A DNA stretch of 64,000 bases, taken from Prasinococcaceae sp. CCMP 1430. Taxonomy: Eukaryota > Plantae > Prasinodermophyta. This document shows, piece by piece, positions 3,253 through 46,019 of this stretch. How positions within the stretch are numbered: position 1 is the stretch's first letter; each line of letters begins with the position of its first letter. Made by a program: the position numbers and the translations under genes. A model generated the notes under the pieces. It had not been told where the DNA came from. It did no database searches and was given only the letters and a program-made list of their open reading frames with translations. The stretch is from the NCBI GenBank assembly GCA_013416795.1, contig RQSC01000024.1, forward strand, positions 40,838 to 104,837, written 5' to 3'.

Positions 3253-3415
3253 CGAGCGGAGAAAGTACACTATAGCTAGAGTCATACGATCGAAGCTCTT
3301 CTCTTTCTTAAAAACAACACATCCTCACAAAGCTTGTGATGACACTACTGCTTTCTTCACTCGAGTTCCTGAGCGCGAGGCCGGCGTCCTTGCTCATGGA
3401 GGCCCGCGGTACTAC

Positions 3416-6376
3416 CTAATGAGCCACGGTCGTCCCCGCAACCGCATCGAATGCAGGCCTCGGCCACTCGTCACTCGCGGTAACACTCGCCTGTATCTGC
3501 AACAGCTCGTCGCTTATCGGCCAGCCGCCTTGCACGAAACCCACCAGGACAACCGCGTCCCGAAAGAGCGCGTATGTGACTGGAGTGCTGCCTTGCGCCC
3601 CAGGGCTGTGCACGTGCCTGTCGCAGACGAGGGTCCATATGTCTGCCAGTGTGCGACGGGGGAGCCCGCTGCTCGCCAACAGCGCCAACGCATCTGCCGC
3701 GGCGATGTCGTTGCGCGAGGGATCCGGCTTGGATCGCCCGCCTGCGAGCTTGAACAGCGAAGAGATGAACGACTCGTCGTCTTCGTTGGGATCCCCTGAA
3801 GACGGCACCGGTGCCGTGGACCCTACTTCGGGTGGCGACGCACATATGTTGGCTATGGACGCTTGCGGCCGGTGAGGAGGAGGCGACGGAATCGCAACTG
3901 CCGGCGAGGATGCATCGCCGCCTTTCCCGCGACTCGAGGCTGGGGAAACTGAAGCAGACAGCGAGAACTGGCCCCTGGCGTAAGGCGTCTTCCCCCCTCG
4001 CTGTGATCTGCTTTGTGGCTCATCAACAATAGGCGGCGGGGTATCTACATCGCGGCTCATATCTGCGCCACCGTGCTTCGCTTGGCCTTCCACACCCTCG
4101 GCGGCGAGCTCGAGCCCCTGCAGCTGCATAGAGGTCTCGAGAAGGGTCCCTTCCAAGCTTTCTGCGAGCCTCAATCTTGCAAGGCGACGCTGACTCGCAG
4201 AACGCGTGCGGCGCAGAGACAGGGCGACCATGTCATCGCGGTCGAGGCGGACGCCAGACGCAAGATCCTGGTGTTGCTCTCGTGAAAGTAGGGGGCCATC
4301 CACGCGCTGACCCGCCGCCGTCGGCGTGCGCCGGGGCTGCGGCGTCGTAGTCGCCGTCGAAGACGGCGCAGACTGCTCGCTGATGGACGTGGTGCTGTCG
4401 GCCTCGAACGAAGTTGATGTGGCAGTCATTCGGTCGAAACCAATCTCTGCCTCCTTCAGGGAGCGCCACTTTGGTATTGGCGCAAGGTCTGGCTGCTCAC
4501 CACCTCCAGTATCGCCAGCAGCGCGGCTGCTCTCGTGGGACGTCGGTGGGGGGGTAGGACTGGTAGTCCTGTGCCCTCGCAGATTCACGCTTGTAGGCAA
4601 ACTGAGCTGCCGCACCGCCTGTGCCATTCTAACCCCCTCATCTTTCGCCTGCCGGTGGGTTGCCTCAGCCGTGTCTGGATCGTTAGGCTCGCGAGCATTC
4701 GTGCGAGCAGGTGCCACGGTGGTCTTCGAAGCCGAAGCTGCTGCAGGCGGCGTGCGATATGGGGTGCCTGGTGGTGGGGGGGTGCTCGCTATAGCGCCCT
4801 CGCTCGCGGTTTCGTAAACCTCTCTTCCTGAGTTGACGCCAGAGCGCGTTGACGCCACCGACTGGGGGGTGTTGACAGAAGCAGAAGCAACCGATGCGCT
4901 CTCCTTGCCCTCAGCAGTCCTCATAGGCTTGGCTAGCATGGGCGTCTGCAAATTTTGCATATTGCTTTCGCCTGCATGGTCGAACGCAAAGGACGGGAGG
5001 GATGACATCGACCGACGGACGGCGCCATGGCCGAGCGTAGACTGCTGCGTGGCGGCGGGTGTGGCTGCCGCTGTTGGCACGGTGAGTTCGCGCACTCGAA
5101 CCTCGAGGCTGCGGATCTCGCACCTCGCTGCGGCGAGTTCGGCGCGAAGTATGCCTATGTCGAGTTCGCGCGCCAACGTATCATCGCCAGCCATTGCATT
5201 GCTCACGCCTTTCTGCGCGGGCGCCTGTGCGGTGCCGGCGCCGGAGTCACTCTCGCTCGCGGTGCTGTGCGTCGCTGTGCCCTCTGCAGCCTGTCGCGCT
5301 GCGACGACGGACATGCTTGGTGTCTTCCCTCCTATGGGTGAGTGCATCGTGCCATTGGCCGAGGCCTCGAGCGTGGCTGCCTCGAGGAGCGCGCTCTCGA
5401 GCCAGTTTGAGAGCGCGGCGGCTGCGGCGGGGGCCTCCGTGGAGGCGTGCTCCAAAACTTGCACCCTGCTCCAGTTGGAGGCGAGCCATTTGTCGAGCTG
5501 CCTCGCCGCGGCCGCATGAAACTGCTGCTGCGCGGCAACCAGCGCGAGTGCCGAGGCCGAGAGCAGCTGCGGCGCTGCTGCCATGCGAACCTGCAGCGCC
5601 CCGAGAGGATCCGAGCGCGCGACGCGCGCGCGCATTTCTTGCGCGCGCCTCTTTGCCTCGATGCACTCCCCTTCGAGATCGAGCACGCGTTCGTCCACGT
5701 CAGACACGCCAGTTTCTCGCAGCTCGGCGAGTCTCGTGCGTGCACTCTCGGCGGCTTCGGCGGCCTCGCGAGCCCGCGCAACCGTCTCTACCAGCTCGAG
5801 CACCACATTCGCCTCTTCCTCCAGGGGTATCACGATGCCTTGCTGCGTCATTATGCGCGCCTCGGTGACGCCACTCTTGCTGAAAGCCGAGAGAACAACT
5901 TCGGGGCAGTGCATGCCGACGCCCGCAGCCGATGCGGCCTCAAGCATCCCTTCGTTGGCCTCAGCAGCGGCGACGCATAGCACCTCCTCTGCCTCGCCTA
6001 GGGCTTGCGCCTGCTGGGCCGCACGCAACAACTGGCTAGCATAGGCGAGCCCCAGCCGCTCCGCCTCGTCGTCTTCGGGGACCGCGCCCTGCTGCTGTTG
6101 CGGGCCGGTTGACCTGCCGTGCACACCCAATGTGCCGGTGAAGCTCCGCGTGCGAGAGAGGCGCAGCGCAGGCGGCTCAGCAGGGACGGGCAAGGTAGAT
6201 GCGGTGCTTTTGCTGCCTCCTGGCGCGCTGGCCGCGCCGCTGCGCCGCTCCTCTCCTGCGCCGCCGCCGTCCTTCGCGCCGCCCGTGGCGCTCTCCGATC
6301 CCGCCAACGCCTCCATCATGAGCTCGCCCGCCGCTGCCACCACGTCGCGCCGATTCTCCCGCGCCGCCCGCACCAC
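3416..6376 (-). CDS. Large protein with N-terminal BAR-like helical region, long disordered linker and C-terminal EH domain (5' end unresolved)
   Basis: 986-aa ORF. C-terminus ALALLASSGLPRRTLADIWTLVCD...YALFRDAVVLVGFVQGG matches the EH consensus (SGLP..L..IW.L.D). Helical region ending LVAAQQQFHAAAARQL resembles BAR C-termini. Confidence 0.7.
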   Translation of the reverse strand: MVRAARENRRDVVAAAGELMMEALAGSESATGGAKDGGGAGEERRSGAASAPGGSKSTASTLPVPAEPPALRLSRTRSFTGTLGVHGRSTGPQQQQGAVPEDDEAERLGLAYASQLLRAAQQAQALGEAEEVLCVAAAEANEGMLEAASAAGVGMHCPEVVLSAFSKSGVTEARIMTQQGIVIPLEEEANVVLELVETVARAREAAEAAESARTRLAELRETGVSDVDERVLDLEGECIEAKRRAQEMRARVARSDPLGALQVRMAAAPQLLSASALALVAAQQQFHAAAARQLDKWLASNWSRVQVLEHASTEAPAAAAALSNWLESALLEAATLEASANGTMHSPIGGKTPSMSVVAARQAAEGTATHSTASESDSGAGTAQAPAQKGVSNAMAGDDTLARELDIGILRAELAAARCEIRSLEVRVRELTVPTAAATPAATQQSTLGHGAVRRSMSSLPSFAFDHAGESNMQNLQTPMLAKPMRTAEGKESASVASASVNTPQSVASTRSGVNSGREVYETASEGAIASTPPPPGTPYRTPPAAASASKTTVAPARTNAREPNDPDTAEATHRQAKDEGVRMAQAVRQLSLPTSVNLRGHRTTSPTPPPTSHESSRAAGDTGGGEQPDLAPIPKWRSLKEAEIGFDRMTATSTSFEADSTTSISEQSAPSSTATTTPQPRRTPTAAGQRVDGPLLSREQHQDLASGVRLDRDDMVALSLRRTRSASQRRLARLRLAESLEGTLLETSMQLQGLELAAEGVEGQAKHGGADMSRDVDTPPPIVDEPQSRSQRGGKTPYARGQFSLSASVSPASSRGKGGDASSPAVAIPSPPPHRPQASIANICASPPEVGSTAPVPSSGDPNEDDESFISSLFKLAGGRSKPDPSRNDIAAADALALLASSGLPRRTLADIWTLVCDRHVHSPGAQGSTPVTYALFRDAVVLVGFVQGGWPISDELLQIQASVTASDEWPRPAFDAVAGTTVAH

Positions 6377-6425
6377 CCCAACAGCCCCTCACCTCTCACG
6401 GACGCACCAGATCTCGCCCTTCGGT

Positions 6426-6731
6426 CTATCCCGCCACCTGCCGCGGGCCTCGCGCCCTCTCGCCCGGCCGCGCGGCCTCGCCCGCGGCGTGCGCTCGGAG
6501 CAGCCCGCGCAGGTGCGCCGCCACGCCCTCGACGTCGAAGGAAGGCAGCACCCGCGGATGGTGGCGCGAAAAGCCCAGCCCGTCGTTGTCGCTGTCGCCG
6601 TCGTCGCCGCCTTCGCCGCCGTCGCCGCCGCTGCTGCAGCCGCTATCCTCGCGCGCCGCCTCGCGCGCCTCTCTCGCGCGCTTCTCGGCGAGCTTGCGCA
6701 TCATCTCGGCGAGCTTGCCGAGGCCCGACAT
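6426..6731 (-). CDS. Probable 5' coding segment of the BAR/EH gene (MSGLGKLAEMMRKLAEKR...)
   Basis: ATG-initiated, helical, coding-like ORF directly upstream on the same strand. No clean splice junction to the 6376 ORF could be found. Confidence 0.4.
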   Translation of the reverse strand: MSGLGKLAEMMRKLAEKRAREAREAAREDSGCSSGGDGGEGGDDGDSDNDGLGFSRHHPRVLPSFDVEGVAAHLRGLLRAHAAGEAARPGERARGPRQVAG

Positions 6732-7681
6732 GGCGCCAGCCGGCGGGCTGGCGACCGCGCGAAGCCGCGCGCGGGGGGAGTGAGGCTGGCGGGTCGGCCC
6801 GCGTGCGCGGAACCGCCGGCGCGCCCGCCGCCGCGACGACGGAGGCTGGGCCGAGCGTCGGCCCAGCCTCGTCGGCCCCCGGTGGGACCGGGCGGTGCGG
6901 TGTGAGGGCTGTGAGGGCGCCGTGTGGCGCCCCGCACGCGCAGCGCAATGTCATCGGTTTTCCGCTGGGCGCATCAAAATACGCACGATAAAATCATTTG
7001 CATTCGTTTCAAGGGCAAAATTAGGCACGGCTGCCTAGAGCCAGAGCCGGTAGGTCAAAGGCAAAGCGGGCAGACGTTTGGAAGGAAAAGAAGAGTTGGA
7101 AGCAAAAAAAAAAAAAAAAGCACGCGATCGCTCCGAGGCGAGCGAAGCCCCCACAGGGGAAAAGGCGGGGTAAAAGCAGCCAACCCTAATTCATGCGGCG
7201 CAAGACGCAGGTTTGTTCGCACCCGCGTCGCTGCACCGTGCCAGAAAGGGTTTGCAAAGAGTGCGAAAATAATGTCACAGTTGATGAATTCGTGCGGTTG
7301 TGTTTTTTGTTTTTTGTTGGGTGGGAGTTTGGGTTGCAAAGCGCAGCTGACGGCGGTCGCGCGGTGGGGAGTGCGGGCGAGGACTGGCAGTTCGCCAGAG
7401 GGCGCGCGAGAGGCGGGCCCGGTGCCGGCCTGCGGCGAGCCCCCCGCCCTTCCCCGCGCCCCCGGCGTCCCCGCCCGCGCCTACGGGCGACCGCTGGCGC
7501 GCCCGCGTGGCTGGTGTCACGCGCGCGCGTGGGGTGCTGCGCGCGCGCGGCGTGTGGCGCTGCGGTGCCGCTGGCGCAGACAAACGCAACAAGCGTGCGT
7601 TCGCGCCGCTCGAAGGCGCGTTGAGGGTGGGCAGGGGCCAGAGTGACGCACCGCGCGCCCAGCTAGGAGTCGCTACGCGCC

Positions 7682-8755
7682 ATGTGCCCACACCCGCCAC
7701 CGGCGCGCGCCGAGGTGCGCGTGCGCGGCGGCGCTGCCGTGGTGCGCGGTGCAACGGCATCAGTGCCAGCAGCGGCGAACGCGAGCGCATCTGGCGTGAC
7801 GGGCGCGGCGGCCGCGGGCACCGCGCCGAACGCGCCCGTGGCAGTGCTCGCCCACGGGCTGTGCCTCAATCGCACCGAATGGGCGGCCGTCGAGAAGGGT
7901 CTTACCACGCGCGGCATCGAGTGCTTCTCGTACGAGTACGTCGCCGCGCTCGCTGGCTGGATATTCCCCCCACCCTCCTTCTGCCTGGGCGCCCGCGCGC
8001 GCGCACGCAAGCACCTTTTTTCTCGCTGGCTGACTCGCAAATAATACTGGGAGCGCTCGCCCAGTCATCTAGGGCAGGGCGAGTCCGACACGGCCGCCGC
8101 ACGCACCCTTTCCCTCTCCATTGATGCTCTGGCCGACGACATGGCGTGCGTGTGCGAGCTCGCAGGCGGCGGCGCACCCGTACATTTGGTCGGCCATTCG
8201 ATGGGAGGCTATTGCGCGCTGCGGGTGGCGTCGCGCAGACCGGAGCTCGTTGCGAGTCTCACGCTGGTGGGCTCTCGTGCACAGGCAGATCATCCCTACA
8301 AACTCATCGAAGTCGCGCTCATGTCGCTCGTGGTCTTGCTCTTCGGCGTCATCCGTCCAATCGCGGACAGGCTGATGGAAATGATGTTTGGGCCCGCATG
8401 GGTGCGAAACCATCCGGAAGCCGCGAGAAAATGGCACGAACACTTCGCCGCGCTGCCGCGACGCACGCTGCGCGCGGTGTGGGGCGTCGTCACCAGGCGC
8501 TCCATGAGCGACGCTGAGCTTCGTGAGATCCGTTGCCCAGTGCTGGTCGTTCACGGCGAGATGGATGACTCTGTCCCGATCGACGATGCGCGCGTGACCG
8601 CTGCGCGCTGTCCCGAGCTTCGGCGCGTGGCCATGCTGCCAGCCGTGGGGCACACGCCCGCGATCGAGGCGCCCGCTGAAGTCATTGCTCTGTTGGCGGA
8701 GTTCATTGACGAGAGCATGCGCCTGTCATCCCCTGCTGGAGGCAGCTTGAAGTGA
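7682..8755 (+). CDS. Alpha/beta hydrolase, join(7682..7935,8065..8755)
   Basis: VLAHGLCLN oxyanion region; splicing gives YDHLGQGES; nucleophile elbow GHSMGG; HGEMDDSVP acid; GHTPAIE His. Intron GTACGT...CCAG with CTGAC. Confidence 0.88.
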
Positions 8756-9086
8756 GCGGAGTGGCCGTGGCGAGCCGGCCGTGCGCCATATGAGATGGAC
8801 ACCAAAGAGAGAGAGAGGGCACGGCGCGCAAATGGTGGCGAGCCTGGCGTCGACCGAATTGCTTGCCGCAGCCCTGCCACGATGGTGCAGGGCGTCATGG
8901 CCTGGCTAAGCAAGCGCACGCAAGAGGCGCGCTGCAGGCATGAGCGCACGCTGCGCCGTGTGTTCATGATCATCGGAACATGGAACGATACTTAGTTGGC
9001 CTCGCCTGTCGGCGCGGGGAGAGAGGCGCGCCGCCTGTGCATCGCCCACTTTCGCCTGCCAACGAGCCCCGCCTTCGAGCTCTCTC

Positions 9087-10736
9087 CTAGCCCATCACGT
9101 CGAATAGCATGCCCGTTTTGTGCAGGTTCTCAACGAGCTTTTCCCCGCCAGCCATGGAAGGCGTAAGCACTCCTCCCTTGAACTCAAGTTCGTCGCGGTG
9201 CAGCGCGAGGCAGATTGCCACCTCGACGGCCATGTGGCCGGTTTCCTCGTACGCCTCTCCCGCTGACATGCGCACCTTGAGCCTCTCGCCGTCGGCGGCC
9301 TCGGCAATGAAGTAGTACTTGTTCTGTGCCGTGGCGCGCGTGGCCGCATCCTCACCCTCGCCTTGCTTGAACAACTTGCCGGCCTTCTCGAGCTCCTCCT
9401 CCTGCTTCTTCGAGCTGCTCGACGCGGCGGCCGCCGCTTTGGCGTCCTTCTCGGACCCCACCAGAATATGGTTACGAAAGTTGAAGCCTTTGCCGAACGA
9501 CTTACCGCGAGCGCACTTGCGCAGGTAGTTTGAGCGGCGCACCAAGCGCGTCTCGAAAAAGGAGTACATGAAGGGCGTCACCCATCCCTGAGAGGGCGAT
9601 GGCGCCCAAGTGTAAATGCGGAGCGACCGGGGGGATGGGTGGGGGCGGGGCGTGCGGAGGTCAGCACAAACGAGACGCACGTGCGCTGACGGGGAGGAGC
9701 GCGCTCGCGCGCAAAAGCTCCGCTGGGCACGCACAGTCATGCCCATGTCTGCTTTGGCGATCTTCTGCAGCTCCCTGTCCTGGTCTTCGGGGCGCTTGCC
9801 ATCGCCAATGCGCCCGCCGAGGGAGAAAGGGTCCATCATGAGGTGCCCGTGGTCCCTCATGGCACCGGCCATCGCTTCGCGCGTGGCGACGGTGCCGCCT
9901 GAAGGCGCAAGTTGGCCCGTCGAGGTGACAAAGCCAACGCACTTGTTGCATCTCTTGCCCTTGATCTCCGCGAGCTTGTCCACCGCGTACGTCGCGAGGA
10001 CGTCCGTGGCACCACCCGCAAAGGCCGCATTGGGCACCACCATAACGTTGTTTTTCTCGGCGTACTCGTGGTACTCGAGCAGCTTGTGCGTGAAGGGAAT
10101 CTCGCCGTTGACGTCCACGTAGTCCGTATCAAACAGCAGGCACGCCTCCACGAGGTTCTCGGCGCCGGTGAGCATGAAAGGGCCCGCGATGTTGACCATG
10201 ACGTCGCAGCGCTGCACCAGACGGCGCACGTCCTGCGGGTCCTTGAGGCTAGCGCCGATCACGGGGGGGTCCATGCCCTTCCACTCGTACTCGGCGAACA
10301 CCTTCTTCTTGACTGCCTCCACCTTGTGCGCCGTGCGCCCCGCGAGCGCGAACTTGACCTTGGTGGGGTCGCAGTGCTTGCAGATGTACTCGAGCGTGAG
10401 CTGCCCCGTGTAGCCACTCGCGCCATACACGATGAATGTGAACTCGCGCTCGCCGCGAGGCTTGTTGTCTTCATAGCCCAGGTACTCGCTCATGAAGGCC
10501 TCGCTCGTCGCGTCGTCGAGCACCCAGTCCGAATTCTTTCGCATGAGCTCCTCGGAGCCGTAGAACACCTCGTCTCTGATGGCCTCTCGCATGGCATCCT
10601 TGTCCATGAGCTCTGCGTAAAACTTGGTGGGCATGCCCCAGTTGGTGATCTCCTCGCCAAGGTGGTTGCGCGCCGGCGGCTCTCCCGCCTTGGGCGGCAT
10701 GGCCGGCACAGTGTGCGTCTTGGCCTCGAAGACCAT
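9087..10736 (-). CDS. Saccharopine dehydrogenase-like oxidoreductase (SCCPDH / trans-acting enoyl reductase family), intron 9588..9734
   Basis: IVYGASGYTGQL, FALAGRT, NIAGPF, DYVDVNGE, GGVLTPSMAGG motifs. In-frame 147-nt GTGCGT...CAG intron. Confidence 0.88.
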   Translation of the reverse strand: MVFEAKTHTVPAMPPKAGEPPARNHLGEEITNWGMPTKFYAELMDKDAMREAIRDEVFYGSEELMRKNSDWVLDDATSEAFMSEYLGYEDNKPRGEREFTFIVYGASGYTGQLTLEYICKHCDPTKVKFALAGRTAHKVEAVKKKVFAEYEWKGMDPPVIGASLKDPQDVRRLVQRCDVMVNIAGPFMLTGAENLVEACLLFDTDYVDVNGEIPFTHKLLEYHEYAEKNNVMVVPNAAFAGGATDVLATYAVDKLAEIKGKRCNKCVGFVTSTGQLAPSGGTVATREAMAGAMRDHGHLMMDPFSLGGRIGDGKRPEDQDRELQKIAKADMGMTVRAQRSFCARARSSPSAHVRLVCADLRTPRPHPSPRSLRIYTWAPSPSQGWVTPFMYSFFETRLVRRSNYLRKCARGKSFGKGFNFRNHILVGSEKDAKAAAAASSSSKKQEEELEKAGKLFKQGEGEDAATRATAQNKYYFIAEAADGERLKVRMSAGEAYEETGHMAVEVAICLALHRDELEFKGGVLTPSMAGGEKLVENLHKTGMLFDVMG

Positions 10737-37083: not shown

Positions 37084-39012
37084 ATGGACGCCGCCGTGGC
37101 CGGGGCTGCAGAGCGCAGGCGGAACGCCGTATCCACGGCGCTCGATGAGGTGCCCACCAACGGCAATTTCGGCGTGCCCCTCGCTGGGAGCGCCGCAGCG
37201 AAGGGCGCGCCTGCCGCGGCGGCGAAAGGGGCGAGCGGGAACAGGGCGCAGCCGCCTCCGCGGCCGACGGCGGGAGACGGGGGGCGAGCCTTACCAGGCG
37301 CGCAATCCCAGCCCGCGCCGCAGCGAGCAGCGCCAGCGACTGCGCCCCTGGCGCAGTCGCAGCCTGCCCCGGCGCGCCAGGCGTCGCAGGCGGAGCTCGC
37401 TGGAGGGTGGGGGCCAGACATGGCGTTCAATGGGGCGGGCACCTCGGGCGCCGCAGGTGCGCAGCGTGGCGCTGCTGCGCAGCCTGCACCCGACACCGCC
37501 GAGGAGCTCGCTGAACTGGATCGCGAGTGGGCAGAGGTTCGCGTGATCACCGCGTCACAGCAGGAGGCCCTGGACGCGCCGACGACGGGTGACACGTTCG
37601 AGGAGTCCCCGGCCTACGAGTCGCTCCTGCACCTGCCACCTACAGAAACGCAGCGGCAACAAGAAGGCGCTCAGACCGAGCCACCGGAGCAGCAGCAGCA
37701 CAACCGCCACCAGTTGGAGCAAGCTCCTCCCGAGAGCGAGAGGGCGGTCGCGGTGCAGGGGGTGCCGCCGGCGGCTGAAGCTCCCTTGCAGACGCAACCG
37801 GAGGAGGCCAGGCAGCCGGCGCTATTCGAGGCAGAGGACTCGGACGACAACAGCGACTTCAGTGATGCCGTAGAGGAGTTGGCGCGACCGCGGTCCATGT
37901 CGCGCAGCCCAGACTTGCGCGGGCCCGGGCTCGCCCTGCCTGAGGAGACGCCGGTCCGAGAGAGGCAGCGACAGTTCACGCCTGCCTCGCGCGGCTCAGA
38001 TGAGCCGGAAAGGTGGCGGGCGGTGCCATCCCAGGCGAGGGCGAGCGAGGACGGCCGTAGCGACATGTTCCTGACGCAGCGCCCGGCTACGCAGGCGCCC
38101 GCGGGTTCGCAAGCCGACCCGATGGCCCAAGCGACGCAGCAGCCCACGCCCATGCTAATGACACAGGCGCCGCAGGTTCCGCCGGCGACCGATCCTCAGC
38201 AGCCAGCGCAGGAGCCAACGCAAGCCACGCCCGTGCTTGCGACGCAGGCACCTCGCCGCAGCTCGGGCGCGCCGGCCCCAACGAATGAGGCGGCCCTCCC
38301 CGGTGCCGCGGAGAAGGAAGAAGAAGGGGGTGCGCCGCGCCGCGGCTTCGTGGTCGACACGCCGGCGAGCGAGGCGCCGCCGATAAAAGTGACCCTTCCG
38401 GCATCGATCCCGGAGACACAGCAGGATGCCTTCGGCGACGGCGGCGGTGGTGGTGAAGACCAGGGAACCGCGCAGCAGCAGCAGGAGGAGGAGGAGCAGA
38501 GAGAGCAGCAGCAGCAGCCGCAGCAGCAGGATCAGAGCACGGAGAGTGGCGAGCAGGACGCCGAGCTTCGGGAGCGTGTGCACCGGTCCGTCCCCCCCAA
38601 GAAGCGCATCCGCTCGGGCGCCGGTGCGGTGCCCACGCCAACCGGAGCGCAGCCTGCATCAGAAGTGCCATCCGCAGCGGCGCGGGCGCCGGAACGCGGC
38701 GGCGGCGCGGGGCCATCAGATCCGCCGGCCAAGCAGCGAAAGGTGGCAGTGCCGACCACTGCGGTGCCACCATCGGCTACCGCGAAGGGCAAGGCGCAGG
38801 TGCGCGACAAGGAGGCGATGCCCGCCGTGGTCTCGGGGCGGAAGGCGGCGCCGAAGAACAAGAAGAAGGCTTCCGGGAAGTCGCGTGTGCCGGCAAAGGC
38901 CCCCTCTGCGCATGAGCTGCGCATGAAGAGAGCGGCAGACAGGGCGCTCGAGCTCGCGCTGCGCAGGATCCAGGAGCAGGCTGGGATCCCGGCAACGCAG
39001 GAGACCCAGTGA
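37084..39012 (+). CDS. Disordered SQ/TQ-rich hypothetical protein
   Basis: ATG at 37084 just after the gap; low complexity; 11 TQ and 6 SQ dipeptides counted; basic NLS-like KKRIR and KKKASGK. Confidence 0.75.
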   Translation: MDAAVAGAAERRRNAVSTALDEVPTNGNFGVPLAGSAAAKGAPAAAAKGASGNRAQPPPRPTAGDGGRALPGAQSQPAPQRAAPATAPLAQSQPAPARQASQAELAGGWGPDMAFNGAGTSGAAGAQRGAAAQPAPDTAEELAELDREWAEVRVITASQQEALDAPTTGDTFEESPAYESLLHLPPTETQRQQEGAQTEPPEQQQHNRHQLEQAPPESERAVAVQGVPPAAEAPLQTQPEEARQPALFEAEDSDDNSDFSDAVEELARPRSMSRSPDLRGPGLALPEETPVRERQRQFTPASRGSDEPERWRAVPSQARASEDGRSDMFLTQRPATQAPAGSQADPMAQATQQPTPMLMTQAPQVPPATDPQQPAQEPTQATPVLATQAPRRSSGAPAPTNEAALPGAAEKEEEGGAPRRGFVVDTPASEAPPIKVTLPASIPETQQDAFGDGGGGGEDQGTAQQQQEEEEQREQQQQPQQQDQSTESGEQDAELRERVHRSVPPKKRIRSGAGAVPTPTGAQPASEVPSAAARAPERGGGAGPSDPPAKQRKVAVPTTAVPPSATAKGKAQVRDKEAMPAVVSGRKAAPKNKKKASGKSRVPAKAPSAHELRMKRAADRALELALRRIQEQAGIPATQETQ

Positions 39013-39257
39013 GCGTCGAGCGCGCGCGCTACCCTAGCTGCGGCTACATGTTCCAGACCAAAGAGAACGCATTGGCACTCCTTCGCGCACTGTCCAGCGC
39101 GCCTTGACGCGCGCAGAATAGGTGGCGTGTCTGTCCCGCGACTCCTTGCATCGCTCTTGTCGGGCGCAGCAGGAGTGGCGGCGGCGAGCGCAGGCCGTCC
39201 GCGCGAAACACAAAGCCGCGACGAAGTGTGCCATGGCCACCATACACTCCTGTCGCG

Positions 39258-40469
39258 ATGCAGTGCCACACCGCGCGCGCCGTGCGCGCGCTTTTGCCCG
39301 CCGCTGTCCCCATGGCGACCGCGTCGCCAGGCATCGCCGCTCGCCGCGCCTCGACCAGGCCACGCGGTGCGCGCCATGTGCGCGCCGCCGGCGCGCCGCG
39401 CACACGCGTGCGCCCCTGCGCTGCCACTGCCTCACTGCCCGAGGACGAGCTGCATGCGCTGCGAGCGGCCGCCGAGGAAGCTGCAGAGGCCGGGGCGCGT
39501 GTCATCAGGGACGCGCTCGGCGACGGCACCGCAGCCGGTGCGCCGCGTGGTGTCGCGATGCGCGAGGTGCGTGTTCGCAGGAGCACGCGTTGGCCCGCGC
39601 GCCGGTGGTGCCGCAGGCGTCGGCGCAACCGCTGCTTGCTGACGCACGCTTGCGCACTCTACCGCGCCTTGCAGAAGAGCTCTGCCGCCGACATTGTGAC
39701 GGAGGTAGATGGGCGTGCTGAGGAGGCGGTCATCGCCGCGCTGCGCAGCGCGCTCGGTGATTCTTCGGTGGCAATCCTCGGCGAGGAGGGCGGCGTGACG
39801 GGCGACACCGCTGGCTCCGAGCTGCTGTGGTGCGTGGACCCCCTGGACGGCACGACAAACTTTGCGGCGGGCTACCCGTCGTTCGCGGTGAGCGTGGGAT
39901 GCCTCTTCAGAGGAGCGCCCGTTGCCGCGGCGATCGTGGAGTTCACGGGTGGCCCGTTCTGCTGGGCCACGCGTACCTTCAGCGCGGCAAAGGGCATGGG
40001 CGCCACATGCCAAGGCGCGCCGATCGAGTGCTCGCCCAACGACGCGATCGAGAAAAGCCTGCTGGTCACGGGTTTCGGCTACGACCACGGGGCGGCCTGG
40101 GCGGCCAACATGGAGTCTTTCAAGCACTTCACCGACTGCACGCGCGGCGTGCGCAGGCTGGGTGCTGCGGCTGTGGACCTTTGCCATGTCGCCCTGGGCA
40201 TAGTCGACGCCTACTGGGAGTACAATTTGTCGCCGTGGGACGTCGCCGCTGGCGTGCTGATCGCCCAGGAAGCCGGCGCGCTCGTGACGACGCTGGATGG
40301 CAAGCCGTACAGCGTGTTCGACCGGAGCATGATCGCTGTGACGCCGGGGTTGCAGGGGGCGATCCTCGACTCCTATCTCGCCCCGAGGACTCGGCGGCTC
40401 GTCGAAGAGGAGGGTGTCGACCTCGGGAGGTGGAAGATGCCGGAAGGTGTCATTCTCGACCTGCCTTAG
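39258..40469 (+). CDS. IMPL1: Inositol monophosphatase, plastid IMPL1-like; intron 39567..39674
   Basis: DIVTEVD...E, ILGEEGG, WCVDPLDGTTNFAAGYPSFAVSVG, GVRRLGAAAVDLCHVALG, WDVAAG. Transit-peptide-like N-terminus. Confidence 0.92.
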   Translation: MQCHTARAVRALLPAAVPMATASPGIAARRASTRPRGARHVRAAGAPRTRVRPCAATASLPEDELHALRAAAEEAAEAGARVIRDALGDGTAAGAPRGVAMREVRVRRSTRWPARRWCRRRRRNRCLLTHACALYRALQKSSAADIVTEVDGRAEEAVIAALRSALGDSSVAILGEEGGVTGDTAGSELLWCVDPLDGTTNFAAGYPSFAVSVGCLFRGAPVAAAIVEFTGGPFCWATRTFSAAKGMGATCQGAPIECSPNDAIEKSLLVTGFGYDHGAAWAANMESFKHFTDCTRGVRRLGAAAVDLCHVALGIVDAYWEYNLSPWDVAAGVLIAQEAGALVTTLDGKPYSVFDRSMIAVTPGLQGAILDSYLAPRTRRLVEEEGVDLGRWKMPEGVILDLP

Positions 40470-40623
40470 GGCCTAGCTAGAGAGCTCTCTAGCTCTAGCT
40501 AGAGCGCTTTCTACTAGAGCTAGCTGCATGGCTGGACGCAGTCGCAGGCCAGCTTGGGCTGCTGCGTGACTTTGACAAAACCACAAAAAATTATTACTCG
40601 GTGCGGACGCCATCGCCTTCACG

Positions 40624-43086
40624 CTACAGCGCCGTGACGACCGCGCCCCTGACGACCGCGGGCAAAGGGACCGAACCTGACCGCACCCCTTCGATGAAGA
40701 GCGCGTGCAGCTGGTCGGTGAACTCGCCCCAGTTGGCGAGAGGGCCCGTGCCGGTGAGCACAACCTGCACCCACATGCCCATCATCGCCACCATCGCCAG
40801 CCGCGCGTGCTTGATCTCGCTGGTGCGCAGCTCGTGCAAGCGCTCGTCCGACGTGACGGTGAGCCCCAGCGGGTCGAAGAGGCCACCCGGGTAGATGCGC
40901 GTCTCGTAACTTCCGCTGGCGGACGCGCGCAGCATCTCGGCGAACCCTTGCATGAACAGCTGCAAGCCGATGAACGCCTGCATGGACATGGTGTTGTCGC
41001 CCTGCAGCATGGCCAGGTGGTGGATGTTCATGAACACGGCACCCTCCCTGAGCTCCGTGGCGGGCGCCTGCGACCACGACTCCACGTAGCCGAGCGCCTC
41101 GGGCGCCATGCAGCCCACCGCCGCCAGCATCGCCCAGCGCCCGTGGAGGACCTCGACCTCGCGCAGGTACTCGAGGCGCGAGCCGCAGTACGACTTCTCG
41201 TCGTACCCCGGCGGCAGCCACGTGCCCAGGCCGCTGCCGTCCGCGGCGCGCCTGTCCTCGCGCGTGAAGCCCACCGGGTCGAAGCCCACGTCGCCCGGCA
41301 GGCTCCCGTCGAGCTCCACGGGAGCGTTGAGCATCGGCAACCACCCCGCGCGGCGGTCGGAGGCCATGCCGCCGCGCCCAGCGGTGAGGCCCGCCGCGCG
41401 CAGCAGCGGCCACATGTACTGCTCGGCCACGCGCACGCCCGCGCCCTCGTGGCCCAGGTGCGCGATCAGCCTGAAGCGAATGTCGTTGCTCGCGACGGCG
41501 AACACTCGCAGCGCGAACATCAGCAGCTCGGGGCCCGACAGCCGGTGGCTGAGGAAGCTCTGCCACCACACGTTGGGCAGCCGGAAGAACGTGCGGAAGA
41601 AGGCGAGGAGCGTGGGCTGGTCGAAGGTGAGCATCATCCGCATCCCGAACTCGTAGAAGCCCTGCTGCCGCCGCCGGTCGTCGTCCCACAGCTGGTCCCA
41701 CGCGAGGCGCGCCGCCTCCTCGGCGGGCACCTGCGAGTCGGAGGCGAGCCCGTCGGCAATGGCGCGCGCCACGTGGGGGGCGCGCGTGAGCATGTTGGCG
41801 ATGTGGTAGCCGCTCACGGGGTGCACCATGCCGGCGGCCGCGCCGAAGGCCACCGAGCGCTGCGGCGCCACGGGCACCGTGCCGCCCAGCGGGATCCAGC
41901 TGGCCTCCTCCTCCAGCACCGCCTCCACGTGCGCGTCCTCGTCGAGGCCCATGCGCTGCAGCCGGCGCGTCAGGCGCGCCTTGAGCTCGTCGAAGGGCAC
42001 CGCGTGGTCGGTGGGCGCCACGAGGCACGTCTCCTGCAGGAAGACCGTGTCTTCGTCGACGGGGAAGGCGTAGAGGATGCTCGGCCAGTGCGAGTGCGAC
42101 GCGCAGTCCTCGCCGTGCGCGCCCGCCAGCGCCTCCTCGCGCTCGGTGTCCTGATGGCGGAAGTCCATGAAGAGGGCCGTGTCCATGGGCCACGGGTGGT
42201 TCTTCCAGGTGACCTCGTAGCCGTAGGCGGTCTGCATGGTGGGGCGCGGGCCGTCCTCGTAGGCGAGGAGCTCGCGGTTGTGGCCGAGCGCCAGCACGGG
42301 CACCTTGGCACGCAGCGGCGTCTCGCGGCCGCGCACGCGCAGCTCGCTGTGCTGGCGCTCGTGCTCGATGCCATCGACGAGGGCGTCGAGGTACTGCACG
42401 CCGCCGGCGCGCGCGGCGGCCAGCAGCTTGGCGCGCAGCTCGCGGCGGCCCAAGCGCACGTAGCGGCGGCCCAGGTCGAGCTGCTCGCTCTCGGAAAGCC
42501 ACACCTCCATCTTGTCGTAGCGCTGGACCACGGCGTCGCTGAGGTCCAGCGGGATCTCGGCGAGTTCGTCCTCGAAGATGCCGTAGTTGTTCACGAAGCA
42601 CGACTCGGGGCCCAGGAGCAGCACGCTCAGGCCGGTGCCGGCGAGCTCGGCGGCCATGGCGATGCCGGCCGGGCCGGTGCCGACCACCACGGCGTCGTAG
42701 TCATCGCGTCCGTCGGCCGGCTCTAGTTGGCTCGACAGCGGCGGCTGCTCCGTGTCCTCCTTGCCCTCCTGGAACGACACCCACTTGCGCGAGCTCGAAT
42801 CGAGCTCGCGCTCGAGGCGCTCCTCCGTGCGCTCGGCCCACACGGCGCACCGCGCGGGCGCGCGGGCCGAGCGCGCGCGCGCTGCNNNNNNNNNNNNNNN
42901 NNNNNNNNNNNNNNNNNNNNNNNNNNNNNNNNNNNNNNNNNNNNNNNNNNNNNCGCGCCGCCGCGCGGATCGCGCGCGCGGCCCGGCCGCGCCGCGCGGG
43001 TTCCGTTCCATTTGGGGTTCACCCCAGATTCGCGCGCATCCGCGCGGCGCCGACAACGTCTCTTTGGCCTCAACAACGGATTCCAT
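40624..43086 (-). CDS. LCYE: Lycopene epsilon-cyclase fused in frame to a C-terminal light-harvesting complex (LHC) domain; N-terminus crosses an N-gap
   Basis: Cyclase motifs VVVGTGPAG, LLGPESCFVNNYG, MQTAYGYEV, FLQETCLV, WIPLGGTVP, GMVHPVSGY. With no stop, LHC motifs follow: LPGDVGFDPVG, REVEVLHGRWAML, YPGGLFDPLG, EIKHARLAM, TGTGPLAN. Confidence 0.93.
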   Translation of the reverse strand: MESVVEAKETLSAPRGCARIWGEPQMERNPRGAAGPRARSARRRXXXXXXXXXXXXXXXXXXXXXXXAARARSARAPARCAVWAERTEERLERELDSSSRKWVSFQEGKEDTEQPPLSSQLEPADGRDDYDAVVVGTGPAGIAMAAELAGTGLSVLLLGPESCFVNNYGIFEDELAEIPLDLSDAVVQRYDKMEVWLSESEQLDLGRRYVRLGRRELRAKLLAAARAGGVQYLDALVDGIEHERQHSELRVRGRETPLRAKVPVLALGHNRELLAYEDGPRPTMQTAYGYEVTWKNHPWPMDTALFMDFRHQDTEREEALAGAHGEDCASHSHWPSILYAFPVDEDTVFLQETCLVAPTDHAVPFDELKARLTRRLQRMGLDEDAHVEAVLEEEASWIPLGGTVPVAPQRSVAFGAAAGMVHPVSGYHIANMLTRAPHVARAIADGLASDSQVPAEEAARLAWDQLWDDDRRRQQGFYEFGMRMMLTFDQPTLLAFFRTFFRLPNVWWQSFLSHRLSGPELLMFALRVFAVASNDIRFRLIAHLGHEGAGVRVAEQYMWPLLRAAGLTAGRGGMASDRRAGWLPMLNAPVELDGSLPGDVGFDPVGFTREDRRAADGSGLGTWLPPGYDEKSYCGSRLEYLREVEVLHGRWAMLAAVGCMAPEALGYVESWSQAPATELREGAVFMNIHHLAMLQGDNTMSMQAFIGLQLFMQGFAEMLRASASGSYETRIYPGGLFDPLGLTVTSDERLHELRTSEIKHARLAMVAMMGMWVQVVLTGTGPLANWGEFTDQLHALFIEGVRSGSVPLPAVVRGAVVTAL
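42886..42953. other. Assembly gap (68 N)
   Basis: N run inside the 5' part of LCYE-LHC. Confidence 0.99.
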
Positions 43087-43380
43087 TTGATTGGGTTCGA
43101 TTGGGTTTTGATGTGGATTCCGCTCTTATCCGCTGCGGAGGGCCGGATTGCGCCCGCACCCAAAGATCTCCCAGGTGCAGGCCCATGCGCCACATCGGAG
43201 CGCACGAAAGGGTCTGCTAAAAATGGATATGGATGTGTAAATAAATATGGAAAGGGGCGGATGTGCGCGGGGAGGGTTTGGGTTTATCGGTCCAAACCTC
43301 AAACGGGACGCGGGCTCGGTTTTGGCGCCGCGCGCGGGCGCGTGTCCCGCGCGCGCCCGCGGCGCCGCCGCCCCGGCAGC

Positions 43381-43433
43381 CCCTGTAAACCCCTTTAACC
43401 CCTTTTGACCCCTTTCACCCCAACCCAAACCCT
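43381..43433. repeat. Degenerate telomere-like (A)ACCCC(T)n tandem tract
   Basis: ccctgtaaacccctttaaccccttttgacccctttcaccccaacccaaaccct. Confidence 0.55.
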
Positions 43434-43712
43434 CGGCCGCGACTCCGGAGTCCTCCGGAGTCCTCCGGGGGCTGCCAGCCAGTCTCTCTCTGTCTGTTGG
43501 TGGGTGGGTGGAAGGGTGGGTGGGTGGGCGTCTGACTGACTCTGAGTGTGTGTGTGATTGTGACTCTGTCTGGCTGGTGTGTGTGCCAAGTGCGCTCCCC
43601 AGCCAGCCTCTGCTCCTGCTCCAGCTCGCGTGCCGGGCCGGGCCAGCAGCGCCGGCGCGCTGCCTGGCCGCGGCCGCGACTCCGGAGTCCTCCGGACTGC
43701 CAGTCTCTCTGT
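43434..43712. repeat. Two copies of a ~50-bp element with palindromic core GACTCCGGAGTC (starting at about 43434 and 43671)
   Basis: cggccgcgactccggagtcctccgga occurs twice, each copy followed by ctgccag...tctctct. Confidence 0.85.
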
Positions 43713-43775
43713 CTCCGTCTCTGTCTCTGTCTCTGTCTCTGTCTCCGTCTCCGTCTCTGTCTCCGTCTCTGTCTG
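43703..43775. repeat. Hexamer microsatellite (TCTCTG/TCTCCG)n, about 12 units
   Basis: tctctctgtctccgtctctgtctctgtctctgtctctgtctccgtctccgtctctgtctccgtctctgtct. Confidence 0.9.
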
Positions 43776-44255
43776 TGTGGCCCGTCGCGGCGGCGGCTCT
43801 CGGCCTCTCGATCCGATCCCGCGCGGGCGCCGCGCCGCTGTGCGCTCCGCCGCCCGCGCGCGCGCGCGCGCGCGCGCGCGCCCCGGATTCGATCCAAAAT
43901 TGCGGGCCCGCGCCCGAAGCGCGCGCGCCATCCCCATCCGCCCTCCAACCAGGCAGGCCGCCCTTCCAGACGCAGGCCATCGTTTTACGATGGGTCGAAA
44001 TTGGGCACACCGCGCGTATTGAATGTACCTTTCGTGTATGTTTTACGGATATGCGTCCAAAATCGACGCGAACTCCTCTCCGCGCGGTGCGCGCAAAAAT
44101 CGCGCGTCCGTGCGGCGGGCGCCGGGGACGAAACCTCAACCTCCGCGCGCGCTCCGCGCGCGCGGGCGCACGTCGCAGAAGGTGTAAATCAGACCCTATT
44201 GAGGGTGTGACCGTAAAGGCGCGCCCGCGGCGGCGCGGCGGCGCGCCACGCGGCG

Positions 44256-44256
44256 N
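44256..44256. other. Single-N assembly gap
   Basis: One N at the 5' end of the LCYB reading frame. Confidence 0.95.
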
Positions 44257-44258
44257 GC

Positions 44259-46019
44259 CGCTGCAGCGCCACGCGGCTGCTGTCCGCTGGGCCTGCGGCA
44301 AAGGAGAGAGAGGGAGGCGATCGCGGCGCGTCAGCAGTTGACGCGCGAGAGGAGCGACGGACGAGAGAGGGGGCGGCGGCGGCGGCGGCGAACGGCGAGA
44401 CGGTGCTCGTGGCGGACGGAGCCGTCGCGCCCGCGGCGATGCCCGCTGGCGCCGCGGCGGCGGTGAGTGTCGGCGAGCGCACGCGCACGGGGGATGGCGC
44501 CGGGGCCAGCGCGAGGGAGAGCGCGCTGGGCGCGCTGCCGGCGTGGGACCCGTCGCTGGGCACGCTGGACCTGGTGGTGGTGGGCATGGGCCCCGCGGGC
44601 CTGAGCGCGGCCGAGGAGGCCTCGCGCCGGGGGATGCGCGTCGTGGTCGTGGAGCCGCGGCCCAACGCAGCGTGGCCCAACAACTACGGCGTGTGGATCG
44701 ACGAGTTCGAGGCGATGGGCCTCGAGGACTGCATCGACACGGAGTGGCAGCGCGCCAAGGTGCAGTTCACCGAGAAGGAGGAGGCGTCGGTGCTCGACCG
44801 CAAGTACGGGCGCGTGAACCGCCGCCGCCTCAAGGATCGCCTGCTCAAGGGCTGCGTGGCGAACGGCGTCGTCTTCCACGCGGCGCGCGCGGTCGGCGTG
44901 ACGCACGCCGAGCGGTGGCGCTCCGCGGTGAAGTGCTCGGACGGCGCCGAGGTGCTCGGGGCGGCGGTGCTCGACGGGACGGGGCACGCGCGCTCGCTGG
45001 TGGAGTTCGAGGGCGAGTTCGACCCGGGGTACCAGGGCGCGTACGGCATCATGATTGAGGTCGAGAGCCACCCCTTCGAGCTGGACACCATGTTCTTCAT
45101 GGACTGGCGCGACGACCACCTGGCCGGCGACGTGAGCATGCGCGAGCGCAACGCCGCGCTGCCCACGTTCCTGTACACCATGCCGTTCTCGCCCACGCGC
45201 ATCTTCGTGGAGGAGACCAGCCTGGTGGCGCGGCCGGCGGTGCCCTTCCCCGAGCTCAAGGCGCGCCTCGAGAAGCGGCTGGCGGGCCTGGGCGTGGTGG
45301 TGAAGGAGGTGCTCGAGGAGGAGTACTGCCTCATCCCCATGGGCGGCGTGCTGCCGAGGATGCCGCAGCGCGTGCTCGGTTTGGGCGGCACGGGCGGCAT
45401 GGTGCACCCGGCCACGGGCTTCATGATCGCGCGCACCCTGGGCGCGGCGCCGCTGCTGATCGACGCGCTCGAGACGGAGCTCACCGCCGCGCGGCGCCAG
45501 GCGGCCTCGGCGCTCCCCACCGGCACGCCGCGGGAGGACGTGCTGGCGATGGTGGACATGGACGAGGTCAGCGCGCGCGTGTGGTCCCAGACGTGGCCTG
45601 ACTGGCGTTTGCAGCAGAGGGAATTTTTCAACACAGGCATGGACATCCTGCTCAGGCTGGGGCTGGACGCCACGCGGTCGTTCTTCGCGGCGTTCTTCAA
45701 GACCAGCACGTATAACTGGCAGGGGTTCCTCTCGTATCGGCTCACGCTGGTCGAGCTCTTTTCGTTCGGGCTGGAATTCTTCGCGGTGGGCGACTGGCGC
45801 ATGCGCAAGTTCACCACGGTCAACGCGCTGCCCGGGGTGTTCACGCTCTTTCAGAAGATCGCGACGGGTGGCTTTTCGCGGCAGGTGGGCATCACGGAGG
45901 GGGAGGAGGGCGTGCGCTGGCGCGGGAGCGCCAAGGGCGACTTCGACGAGGAGATGAAGAAGGCGCTCGAGACGCGCGAGGAGCAGCTGCCCAAGGACGC
46001 GGTGCCGCCCGTGCGGTGA
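44259..46019 (+). CDS. LCYB: Lycopene beta-cyclase (5' end likely lies in the N gap)
   Basis: LPAWDPS, DLVVVGMGPAG, WPNNYGVWIDEFEAM, YGRVNRRRLK, DPGYQGAYGI, FMDWRDDHL, PTFLYTMPFS, FVEETSLVARP, GMVHPATGF. Frame is open back to the N (RCSATRLL..., transit-peptide-like). Confidence 0.95.
   Translation, partial: RCSATRLLSAGPAAKEREGGDRGASAVDAREERRTREGAAAAAANGETVLVADGAVAPAAMPAGAAAAVSVGERTRTGDGAGASARESALGALPAWDPSLGTLDLVVVGMGPAGLSAAEEASRRGMRVVVVEPRPNAAWPNNYGVWIDEFEAMGLEDCIDTEWQRAKVQFTEKEEASVLDRKYGRVNRRRLKDRLLKGCVANGVVFHAARAVGVTHAERWRSAVKCSDGAEVLGAAVLDGTGHARSLVEFEGEFDPGYQGAYGIMIEVESHPFELDTMFFMDWRDDHLAGDVSMRERNAALPTFLYTMPFSPTRIFVEETSLVARPAVPFPELKARLEKRLAGLGVVVKEVLEEEYCLIPMGGVLPRMPQRVLGLGGTGGMVHPATGFMIARTLGAAPLLIDALETELTAARRQAASALPTGTPREDVLAMVDMDEVSARVWSQTWPDWRLQQREFFNTGMDILLRLGLDATRSFFAAFFKTSTYNWQGFLSYRLTLVELFSFGLEFFAVGDWRMRKFTTVNALPGVFTLFQKIATGGFSRQVGITEGEEGVRWRGSAKGDFDEEMKKALETREEQLPKDAVPPVR

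Follow-up and report, generated by a model that had tools for sequence, protein, structure and literature searches.

A single nuclear gene (PRCOL_00002058) of Prasinoderma coloniale, a deep-branching green alga, almost certainly encodes, to judge from its sequence and that of its relatives, one polypeptide in which a lycopene epsilon-cyclase (LCYE), the enzyme opening the alpha-carotene branch of pigment synthesis, is joined through a short, conserved tether to a three-helix light-harvesting (LHC) domain. The gene is located on the reverse strand of the window, the whole stretch of 64,000 nucleotides that we analysed, and lies head-to-head with a separate lycopene beta-cyclase (LCYB) gene. As the first-pass annotation of this DNA had read it, the open reading frame proceeds from the cyclase domain into the LHC domain with no stop codon and no need for an intron. 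The linker between the two Pfam domains comprises 51 residues. The gene, its parts and its neighbourhood are as follows.

40624..43086, minus strand: whole open reading frame of the LCYE-LHC fusion gene (stop codon 40624-40626)
42886..42953, no strand: assembly gap of 68 N in the presumed transit-peptide/5' coding region
41476..42696, minus strand: lycopene epsilon-cyclase domain, residues 64-470 of 753 (Pfam PF05834 Lycopene_cycl, E 3.3e-82)
41323..41475, minus strand: natural LCYE C-terminus (AEQYMWPLL at 41401-41427) and short tether to the LHC N-terminal arm
40765..41322, minus strand: LHC (chlorophyll a/b-binding) domain, residues 522-707 (Pfam PF00504 Chloroa_b-bind, E 5.3e-39)
41179..41262, minus strand: 28-residue insertion between the GDxGFDPxG motif and helix B, at the position of a CP29-specific insertion
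41095..41178, minus strand: helix B (first transmembrane), with Glu, His and Arg of EVLHGR (Chl a602 and a603 ligand positions and ion-pair Arg)
40921..40983, minus strand: helix C (second transmembrane), with Gln, Glu and Arg of Q..FMQGFAEMLR
40753..40848, minus strand: helix A (third transmembrane), with Glu, His and Arg of EIKHARLAM and Gln of WVQVV
40627..40743, minus strand: amphipathic helix D and C-terminal tail (two helices predicted by AF2; kept in a relative of 73% identity)
43087..44402, no strand: intergenic stretch (about 1.3 kb) shared by the two genes, putatively a bidirectional promoter, with (TCTCTG)12 and a CG-rich microsatellite
44403..46019, plus strand: head-to-head neighbour, unfused LCYB, 538-aa open reading frame (Pfam PF05834, E 2.7e-110)

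Integrity of the fusion gene

The translation used in our analysis (40627-42885; 753 aa) starts downstream of the assembly gap. Because these 68 N fall into the 5' coding region, the start codon and the transit peptide of the fusion gene are uncertain. The public gene model (P0023; 744 aa) lets an intron span the gap, and the upstream sequences of relatives did not serve to fill it: one of them (L002) offers 390 bp of upstream DNA with no in-frame ATG, and another (L003) begins inside the gene.

An N gap within a gene raises the question of whether neighbouring LCYE and LHC genes were misread as one through an error of assembly or annotation. The gap is, however, positioned more than 1.4 kb upstream of the LCYE/LHC junction, and the identical junction is present on an independently assembled Tara Oceans metagenome scaffold. 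This scaffold is 98.9% identical over 5.5 kb, contains the same uninterrupted reading frame with three synonymous and three non-synonymous codon differences, and also matches the position of the inositol monophosphatase gene found downstream of the fusion gene. A stop between the two domains, which had been named beforehand as evidence against a fusion, is absent from it. The same architecture is kept at 73% identity in more than 10 further contigs from an uncultured relative (a cluster of 16 sequences, most of them full length), and in Prasinococcus capsulatus it is carried on one MMETSP transcript of 2884 nt. In view of these independent occurrences, we consider an artefact extremely improbable.

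Comparison with the 73%-identical relative yielded dN/dS values of 0.33 for the cyclase, 0.22 for the linker, 0.37 for the LHC domain and 0.32 for the tail. The LHC module is hence under purifying selection comparable to that acting on the cyclase, and the segment 41323..41475 is the most conserved one of the protein, with 82% identity to this relative.

The cyclase and the antenna module

The cyclase half carries the FAD motif VVVGTGPAG (42664-42690, minus strand; DAVVVGTGPAG when read with the preceding residues) and the cyclase motifs FLQETC (42025-42042, minus strand) and EEASWIPLGG (41881-41910, minus strand). The domain was modelled by AF2 with pLDDT values of 85-98, and its best Foldseek matches are geranylgeranyl-reductase-type flavoproteins. 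Its assignment to the epsilon type in the first-pass annotation found support in a separate cyclase tree, in which the window protein falls into the LCYE clade (100/99) together with the unfused enzymes of Tagetes (Q8L8H4), Elaeis and Chloropicon roscoffensis (WZN65391). These have conserved motifs, are devoid of an LHC extension and constitute a subclade (100/97) that is sister to the fusion-type LCYEs, all of which, including that of the window, belong to a single subclade (100/100). In agreement with this placement, comparison with double and triple fusions gave the window cyclase 330-393 bits for their second (C-terminal) cyclase domain and 160-250 bits for the first. By phylogeny, it is a lycopene epsilon-cyclase of the CrtL-e type.

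In the FLEET-type motif, which reads FLQET in the window, the first Glu is changed to Gln and the second Glu is invariant. We rejected the notion that this marks an inactive enzyme, because the Gln recurs elsewhere: Closterium and Chloropicon (P0183) have it in their LCYEs, and two proteins with a double cyclase (P0173 and P0008) have it in the LCYE domain.

The neighbouring LCYB groups with sequences from Pedinophyceae and Chlorokybus and with the N-terminal (LCYB) domains of triple fusions. Since LCYB has a gene of its own on the other strand, the LCYE-LHC protein is a two-part fusion, as the first-pass annotation had proposed, and a relative of the Mamiellales triple fusion.

The position that had initially been given for the LHC domain (about 41345-40700) is correct to within a few codons of the Pfam domain, whose match covers profile positions 2-160 of 162. 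The motifs quoted at that time are also present, EVLHGRWAM at 41128-41154 and EIKHARLAM at 40792-40818, as is the insertion reported after FDPVG, which follows GDVGFDPVG (41269-41295). Counted within 40627-41370, the module has E73, H76, R78, E145, R148, E185 and R190, none of which varies among 88 LHC sequences, as well as H188 and Q202. An AF2 model of the module (pLDDT 79, pTM 0.72) displays three long helices and helix D; in a Foldseek search with this model, all top matches were LHC chains (probability 1.00) and the top 14 were CP29 chains. Judged by sequence, the module is a full three-helix LHC domain with the core chlorophyll ligands and ion pairs all kept.

Could the LHC part nevertheless be a mere membrane anchor or a decaying relic that has lost the ability to bind pigments? 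A Phe of the window aligns with one canonical ligand, the His that binds Chl a614 in CP29 (the 73%-identical relative has a His one position earlier), and the branch of the module is long in LHC trees. Both observations would suit such a fate, but they are opposed by the retention of all seven invariant ligand and ion-pair residues along with His188 and Gln202, by a dN/dS value close to that of the cyclase, and by the confident prediction of an LHC fold; we therefore regard loss of pigment binding as quite unlikely.

The best free-standing sequence match of the module is CP29 (Lhcb4; spinach 3PL9 and 3JCU chain R), with about 40% identity and an E value of 1e-33. The two have in common GPLxNW after helix A, the His of EIKHARLAM at the Chl a612 site, where LHCII, CP26 and Lhca1 possess an Asn, and an insertion at the CP29 site that is confined in our alignment to CP29 and the Prasinoderma pair. 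Unlike CP29, the window protein has a shorter insert that is unrelated in sequence and not alignable to that of CP29, lacks an aligned a614 His, and has its module covalently joined to an enzyme.

Known fusions and the origin of the module

The first-pass annotation had pointed out that Mamiellales possess an LCYB-LCYE-LHC triple fusion and that trimming of its C-terminus changes the product ratio. This matches what later papers cite from the work of Blatt et al. (2015, Plant J 82:582), namely an LCYB/LCYE/LHC triple fusion in Mamiellales (PMC8535525, PMC5408262, PMC9686992) and an altered product ratio upon C-terminal truncation of the Ostreococcus protein (summarised in PMC9686992 and PMC8535525). 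We found the triple architecture in P0171 (1359 aa), in L001 and in the Cymbomonas protein P0170. Like the window protein, the triple fusions, among them OluLCY of Ostreococcus lucimarinus, have an LCYE followed by a C-terminal LHC domain, and their LCYE halves belong to the same 100/100 clade. In contrast to them, the window polypeptide is without an LCYB domain, the counterpart of their N-terminal part being the separate reading frame; furthermore, its linker comprises about 20 residues, compared with about 100 or more in theirs. The two-part layout recurs within the phylum Prasinodermophyta in Prasinococcus capsulatus (P0011 and P0039; 838-839 aa), whose LCYB is likewise unfused and found on a separate transcript (P0182). 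The Prasinococcus fusion is 44% identical overall, has a long linker, and its LHC domain groups with the modules of the triple fusions and CP26. No description of the Prasinoderma LCYE-LHC protein was found in the literature searched; the study by Blatt et al. (2015), known to us via citing papers, may mention two-part fusions of other prasinophytes.

To place the module, we used a maximum-likelihood (ML) tree of 80 LHC rows that include CP26, Lhca1, Lhca3 and an FCP outgroup; it supersedes an earlier, outgroup-free tree of CP29 matches only, which had left the module unplaced. Two sequences (P0052 and P0347) that appeared to be close free-standing relatives of the fusion modules were rejected as polyprotein or chimeric fragments and were excluded. 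The ML tree unites the five remaining fusion modules (100/99) within a larger CP26-containing clade (97/95); the Prasinoderma pair lies outside of it, and is also placed outside the CP29 clade (split 98/99).

This topology raises the possibility that the Prasinoderma fusion is not simply ancestral to the Mamiellales form, and that a CP29/Lhca1-like gene supplied its LHC domain, by separate acquisition or by exchange, the modules of the others being derived from CP26. Similarity scores point in the same direction. With HMMs built from three sequences each, the Prasinoderma module scores 141-142 bits for CP29, 146 for Lhca1 and 95 for CP26, the other fusion modules score 95-133 bits for CP26 and 69-92 for CP29, and a five-sequence HMM of these other modules gives the Prasinoderma module 100 bits. 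The best single-domain PDB match is CP29 for the window and CP26 for P0171 and Prasinococcus. Consistent with this are the difference in linker length and two indels: the N-terminal arm of the others carries an insertion of the CP26 type, and Prasinoderma alone carries the one at the CP29 site. However, AU tests rejected neither a single clade of all seven fusion modules (delta lnL 3.4, p 0.40) nor a grouping of Prasinoderma with CP29 (delta lnL 17, p 0.19), so that the contrast between a CP29/Lhca1-like module in the window and CP26-derived ones in the triple fusions is compatible with one origin. Great length and a compositional bias (GC3 96%) mark the Prasinoderma branch, the His at the a612 position is common to most fusion modules and CP29, and one fusion event is the simplest explanation for the 100/100 clade into which the cyclase halves of all fusions fall. 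We therefore put forward only tentatively, as the less probable course of events, that LCYE acquired an antenna module repeatedly or had its module exchanged, with a CP29/Lhca1-like module in Prasinoderma and CP26-derived ones in Prasinococcus, Pyramimonadales (Cymbomonas) and the Mamiellales-like fusions.

Proposed function and significance

In solved LHC structures, the N-terminus is on the stromal side. One would accordingly expect the module to be inserted into the thylakoid membrane and the cyclase to be held on the stromal face, where antenna proteins take up their pigments. Occupancy of the module by chlorophyll or xanthophyll might then adjust how active or stable the cyclase is, or where it is located, and the flow of lycopene into the epsilon-ring (alpha) branch toward prasinoxanthin-type xanthophylls would be coupled to the demand of the antenna. 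As a whole, we favour this explanation of a membrane-tethered LCYE adjusted by the pigment occupancy of its module, with moderate confidence. Its parts differ in strength: membrane anchoring and pigment binding by the module are likely, and a regulatory coupling of alpha-branch flux to pigment binding is plausible, a suggestion made solely by analogy with what truncation of the Ostreococcus protein did in E. coli. The full-length AF2 model contains no confident contact between cyclase and LHC domain (linker pLDDT <50, pTM 0.65) and does not give the arrangement of the domains.

Pigment-pathway enzymes tied to LHC-type motifs are familiar from ferrochelatase 2, with its C-terminal CAB helix, and from LIL3, which anchors geranylgeranyl reductase. 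There, a chlorophyll-binding motif keeps an enzyme of tetrapyrrole or isoprenoid synthesis at the membrane and may also regulate it. Whereas these cases involve a single LHC helix or a separate protein, the window enzyme is fused to a complete three-helix antenna module.

Alternatively, the chain might be a precursor whose cleavage inside the plastid releases LCYE and a CP29-like minor antenna protein as two free products, as in the LHC polyproteins of Euglena, and the gene would then only enforce co-expression. The module is indeed full length, CP29-like and complete in its ligands; it begins exactly where a mature free LHC protein starts (RRAGWLPMLNAPVELDGSLPGD), only about 15 residues past the natural LCYE C-terminus, the tether is predicted to be flexible or disordered (pLDDT <50 in the full-length model), and LHC polyproteins exist (PDB 9vfj chains). 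The strong conservation of the tether segment (see above) would be unexpected for a mere spacer, though compatible with a conserved cleavage site, and the Ostreococcus homologue is summarised as functioning as an intact fusion in E. coli with its C-terminus influencing catalysis (Blatt et al., 2015, via PMC9686992). On balance, we judge cleavage into two free proteins to be unlikely and retain the membrane-tethered cyclase as our working explanation.

The xanthophylls at the end of this route deserve comment. Prasinoxanthin-type pigments derive from the alpha branch. Prasinococcales contain prasinoxanthin, uriolide and micromonol (PMC4860620), and prasinoxanthin has been assigned to Prasinoderma, Prasinococcus and Ostreococcus (PMC4860620, PMC5656628). 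The first-pass annotation had spoken of alpha-carotene/lutein flux; in Prasinoderma, the alpha branch ends in prasinoxanthin-type xanthophylls and not mainly in lutein (PMC4860620).

LCYE-LHC fusions occur in Prasinodermophyta, Pyramimonadales and Mamiellales-like marine picoeukaryotes, and are absent from Chloropicon and from streptophytes. As far as these sequences reveal, such a spread shows the link between LCYE and the antenna to be old and widespread among 'prasinophyte' lineages. The Prasinoderma fusion is a two-part counterpart of the already known Mamiellales LCYB-LCYE-LHC fusion. In the Mamiellales protein, whatever the LHC domain does is mixed up with the interplay between the two cyclase domains; Prasinoderma isolates the LCYE-LHC pair, with LCYB encoded next door, so that one can measure directly how the antenna module affects one enzyme. 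It is thereby a less complex system in which to examine why pigment synthesis and antenna proteins are coupled. Engineering of the alpha/beta-carotene ratio has been suggested as a use for the tunable Mamiellales fusion (PMC8535525), and the two-part version could be an additional, simpler part for this purpose. If the LHC modules truly differ in origin, the fusions would represent a case of convergent domain capture, and such repeated recruitment of distinct LHC paralogues would indicate that strong selection has recurrently favoured the physical coupling of epsilon-ring carotenoid synthesis to antenna assembly in prasinoxanthin-type green algae.

The LCYE-LHC gene and its genomic neighborhood

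The translation of the LCYE-LHC open reading frame, found in a window with a G+C content of about 70%, is 100% identical to the public protein model P0023 (EukProt EP00793, PRCOL_00002058-RA) and thus belongs to Prasinoderma coloniale. PRCOL_00002058 is already present in the public annotation; no discussion of the P. coloniale LCYE-LHC protein was found in the literature searched. The features of the region are as follows:

39228-40469, plus strand, inositol monophosphatase-family gene converging on the 3' end of LCYE-LHC
40624-43086, minus strand, LCYE-LHC reading frame, open throughout
42886-42953, assembly gap of 68 N interrupting the 5' part of the LCYE-LHC coding sequence
43087-44402, intergenic region between LCYE-LHC and LCYB, about 1.3 kb, with microsatellites
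43706-43778, (TCTCTG)12 in this spacer
43820-43881, CG microsatellite in this spacer
44256, single N upstream of LCYB
44403-46019, plus strand, unfused LCYB (538 aa; PF05834, E 2.7e-110), head-to-head with LCYE-LHC

In the 753-residue translation 3' of the gap, a lycopene cyclase domain (residues 64-470; PF05834, E 3.3e-82) is followed by a chlorophyll a/b-binding domain (residues 522-707; PF00504, E 5.3e-39, 159 of 162 profile positions covered). The frame thus runs from the cyclase into the LHC domain without a stop, as the first-pass annotation had read it, and the motifs quoted there were found at the positions assigned to them. The public gene model spans the 68-N gap by an intron. Since the frame 5' of the cyclase is open but without an ATG in L002, a full-length sequence from a 73%-identical uncultured relative, a short 5' exon of LCYE-LHC is likely.

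LCYE-LHC is a real fusion that is maintained by selection. Judged from sequence comparisons, an artefact in which two genes were wrongly merged into one is very unlikely, because the fusion recurs in three further sources. The Tara Oceans scaffold L003 matches window positions 37252-42769 with 98.9% identity (three synonymous and three non-synonymous codon differences in the fusion gene), and no stop separates the two domains in either sequence. The lineage with 73% protein identity is represented by 16 clustered sequences, drawn from ENA and Logan assemblies and mostly full length with both domains. Prasinococcus capsulatus, a member of the same phylum, carries an 838-aa LCYE-LHC reading frame on a single 2884-nt MMETSP transcript, with LCYB on a separate one (P0182). 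The stop codons of LCYE-LHC and the inositol monophosphatase-family gene are about 150 bp apart; L003 keeps this convergent arrangement (the latter gene at 2334-3545), and a P. coloniale-like population is therefore present in open-ocean metagenomes.

The spacer between LCYE-LHC and LCYB is a putative bidirectional promoter that could possibly serve both branch-point cyclases. Because the two genes are oppositely oriented, simple read-through could not yield the collinear Mamiellales fusion.

Properties of the cyclase and LHC halves

In a maximum-likelihood tree of cyclases (LG+C20, 57 rows; supports are ultrafast bootstrap/SH-aLRT), the fused cyclase falls with the Tagetes, Elaeis, Closterium and Chloropicon LCYEs (100/99), which bears out its earlier assignment as LCYE. 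The neighbor at 44403-46019 clusters with sequences from Pedinophyceae and Chlorokybus, as well as with the LCYB domains at the N-terminus of fusions. Every fusion-linked LCYE lies in one 100/100 subclade, comprising the Prasinoderma pair (the window protein and its 73% relative), Prasinococcus, the C-terminal cyclase of Cymbomonas KAK3288595.1 and Mamiellales-like metagenomic proteins, together with Amorphochlora P0174 and P0012, which both apparently lack an LHC domain. Against double and triple fusions, the window cyclase scores 330-393 bits with the second cyclase domain vs. 160-250 bits with the first. The FAD motif, NNYG, FMDFR, EEASWIPLGG and FGAAAGMVHP are intact. The FLEET motif reads FLQET (42025-42042) in both Prasinoderma-type sequences, a Glu-to-Gln change shared with the Closterium and Chloropicon (P0183) LCYEs and the LCYE domains of the double-cyclase proteins P0173 and P0008. 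The cyclase domain is modeled by AF2 with a pLDDT of 85-98, and among solved structures geranylgeranyl reductases come closest to its fold, in keeping with lycopene cyclases being flavoproteins.

A complete MMETSP transcript product (P0172, 1214 aa) is an LCYB-LCYE double cyclase that carries no LHC domain. The chlorarachniophyte Amorphochlora amoebiformis has an unfused LCYE (P0174, 555 aa), to which the LCYE half of P0172 is sister (100/100). This pattern suggests loss or splitting of domains among the fusion-type LCYEs.

Among 5.8 billion proteins searched, the closest free-standing relatives of the LHC module are CP29/Lhcb4 proteins (about 40% identity), and its best single-domain PDB match is spinach CP29 (3JCU_R/3PL9; E 1e-33), aligned nearly end-to-end. 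The LHC domain had been described as complete with its ligand motifs, and its core ligand residues are indeed kept: in an 88-sequence alignment no variation is seen at the Glu, His and Arg of helix B or at the Glu and Arg of helices C and A, and the WVQVV Gln and EIKHARLAM His are also present. The latter His is of the CP29 type, whereas CP26 and Lhca1 have Asn there; the Chl a614-ligating His of CP29, however, aligns with Phe. The insertion noted earlier is present as 28 residues at the CP29 insertion site but is not alignable to the insert of CP29. AF2 modeling on the 88-sequence alignment (pLDDT 79, pTM 0.72) gave helix D and three long helices, and the top 14 Foldseek matches were CP29 chains from six species. 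Nei-Gojobori dN/dS values against the 73% relative are 0.33 (cyclase), 0.22 (linker), 0.37 (LHC module) and 0.32 (tail), with dS probably compressed at a GC3 of 96%. With ligands kept, an LHC fold predicted and dN/dS low, the module is kept by selection and looks competent for pigment binding.

Distribution of the fusion and origin of its LHC module

In the literature searched, the only fusion of this type described is the LCYB/LCYE/LHC protein of Mamiellales (Blatt et al., 2015; PMC8535525, PMC5408262, PMC9686992). Three sources showed this triple architecture: the marine protein P0171 (1359 aa), the 1.38-Mb marine metagenome contig L001 and Cymbomonas tetramitiformis (P0170, KAK3288595.1, 1296 aa; LCYB 78-499, LCYE 598-1058, LHC 1127-1293). 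The literature searched assigns the architecture to Mamiellales and makes no mention of this fusion in Cymbomonas (Pyramimonadales). On L001 it appears as two reading frames in different frames (LCYB 5392-7575, LCYE+LHC 7872-10127), in agreement with a short intron that has been reported for Ostreococcus (PMC5408262); the fusion is therefore under-represented in public protein sets where genes were called in prokaryote style.

Unexpectedly, the LHC modules appear from their sequences to differ between fusion lineages. The best PDB match of the P0171 and Prasinococcus modules is CP26. In a module tree (80 rows, careful setting), the five fusion modules from outside Prasinoderma group together (100/99), nested in a larger clade (97/95) with CP26 (including the CP26 row P0342), and the Prasinoderma pair is placed apart from them, its long branch showing a weak attachment to Lhca1. 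With HMMs built from three sequences per subfamily and five for the other fusion modules, the Prasinoderma module scores 141-146 bits with CP29 and Lhca1, 95 with CP26 and 100 with the other fusion modules, and the latter score higher with CP26 (95-133) than with CP29 (69-92). Two indels follow the same split, as does the linker, of about 20 residues in Prasinoderma vs. at least 100 in other fusions.

These concordant differences speak for LHC modules captured independently in different lineages, a possible but rather doubtful course of events: the AU test rejects neither a tree that unites every fusion module in one clade (delta lnL 3.4, p 0.40) nor one that joins Prasinoderma to CP29 (delta lnL 17, p 0.19), and the single clade formed by the fusion LCYEs favors one fusion event. 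We therefore lean slightly towards a single ancient fusion whose module later diverged or was replaced.

Pigment context and possible role

Since the N-terminus of LHC proteins faces the stroma in solved structures, a thylakoid-inserted module would hold the cyclase on the stromal face. By analogy with truncation results in Ostreococcus, its pigment occupancy may modulate LCYE and thereby flux into the epsilon-ring branch; the full-length AF2 model gave no confident docking between the two domains. Prasinoxanthin, uriolide and micromonol derive from this branch. They are the main pigments of Prasinococcales (PMC4860620; PMC5656628); Chloropicon, whose unfused LCYE falls in the other LCYE subclade of the 57-row tree, is without prasinoxanthin (PMC5656628). 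The fusion-bearing lineages found largely coincide with prasinoxanthin-type pigment suites, a correspondence that is suggestive only. The interest of LCYE-LHC would grow if independent capture or a regulatory role were demonstrated.
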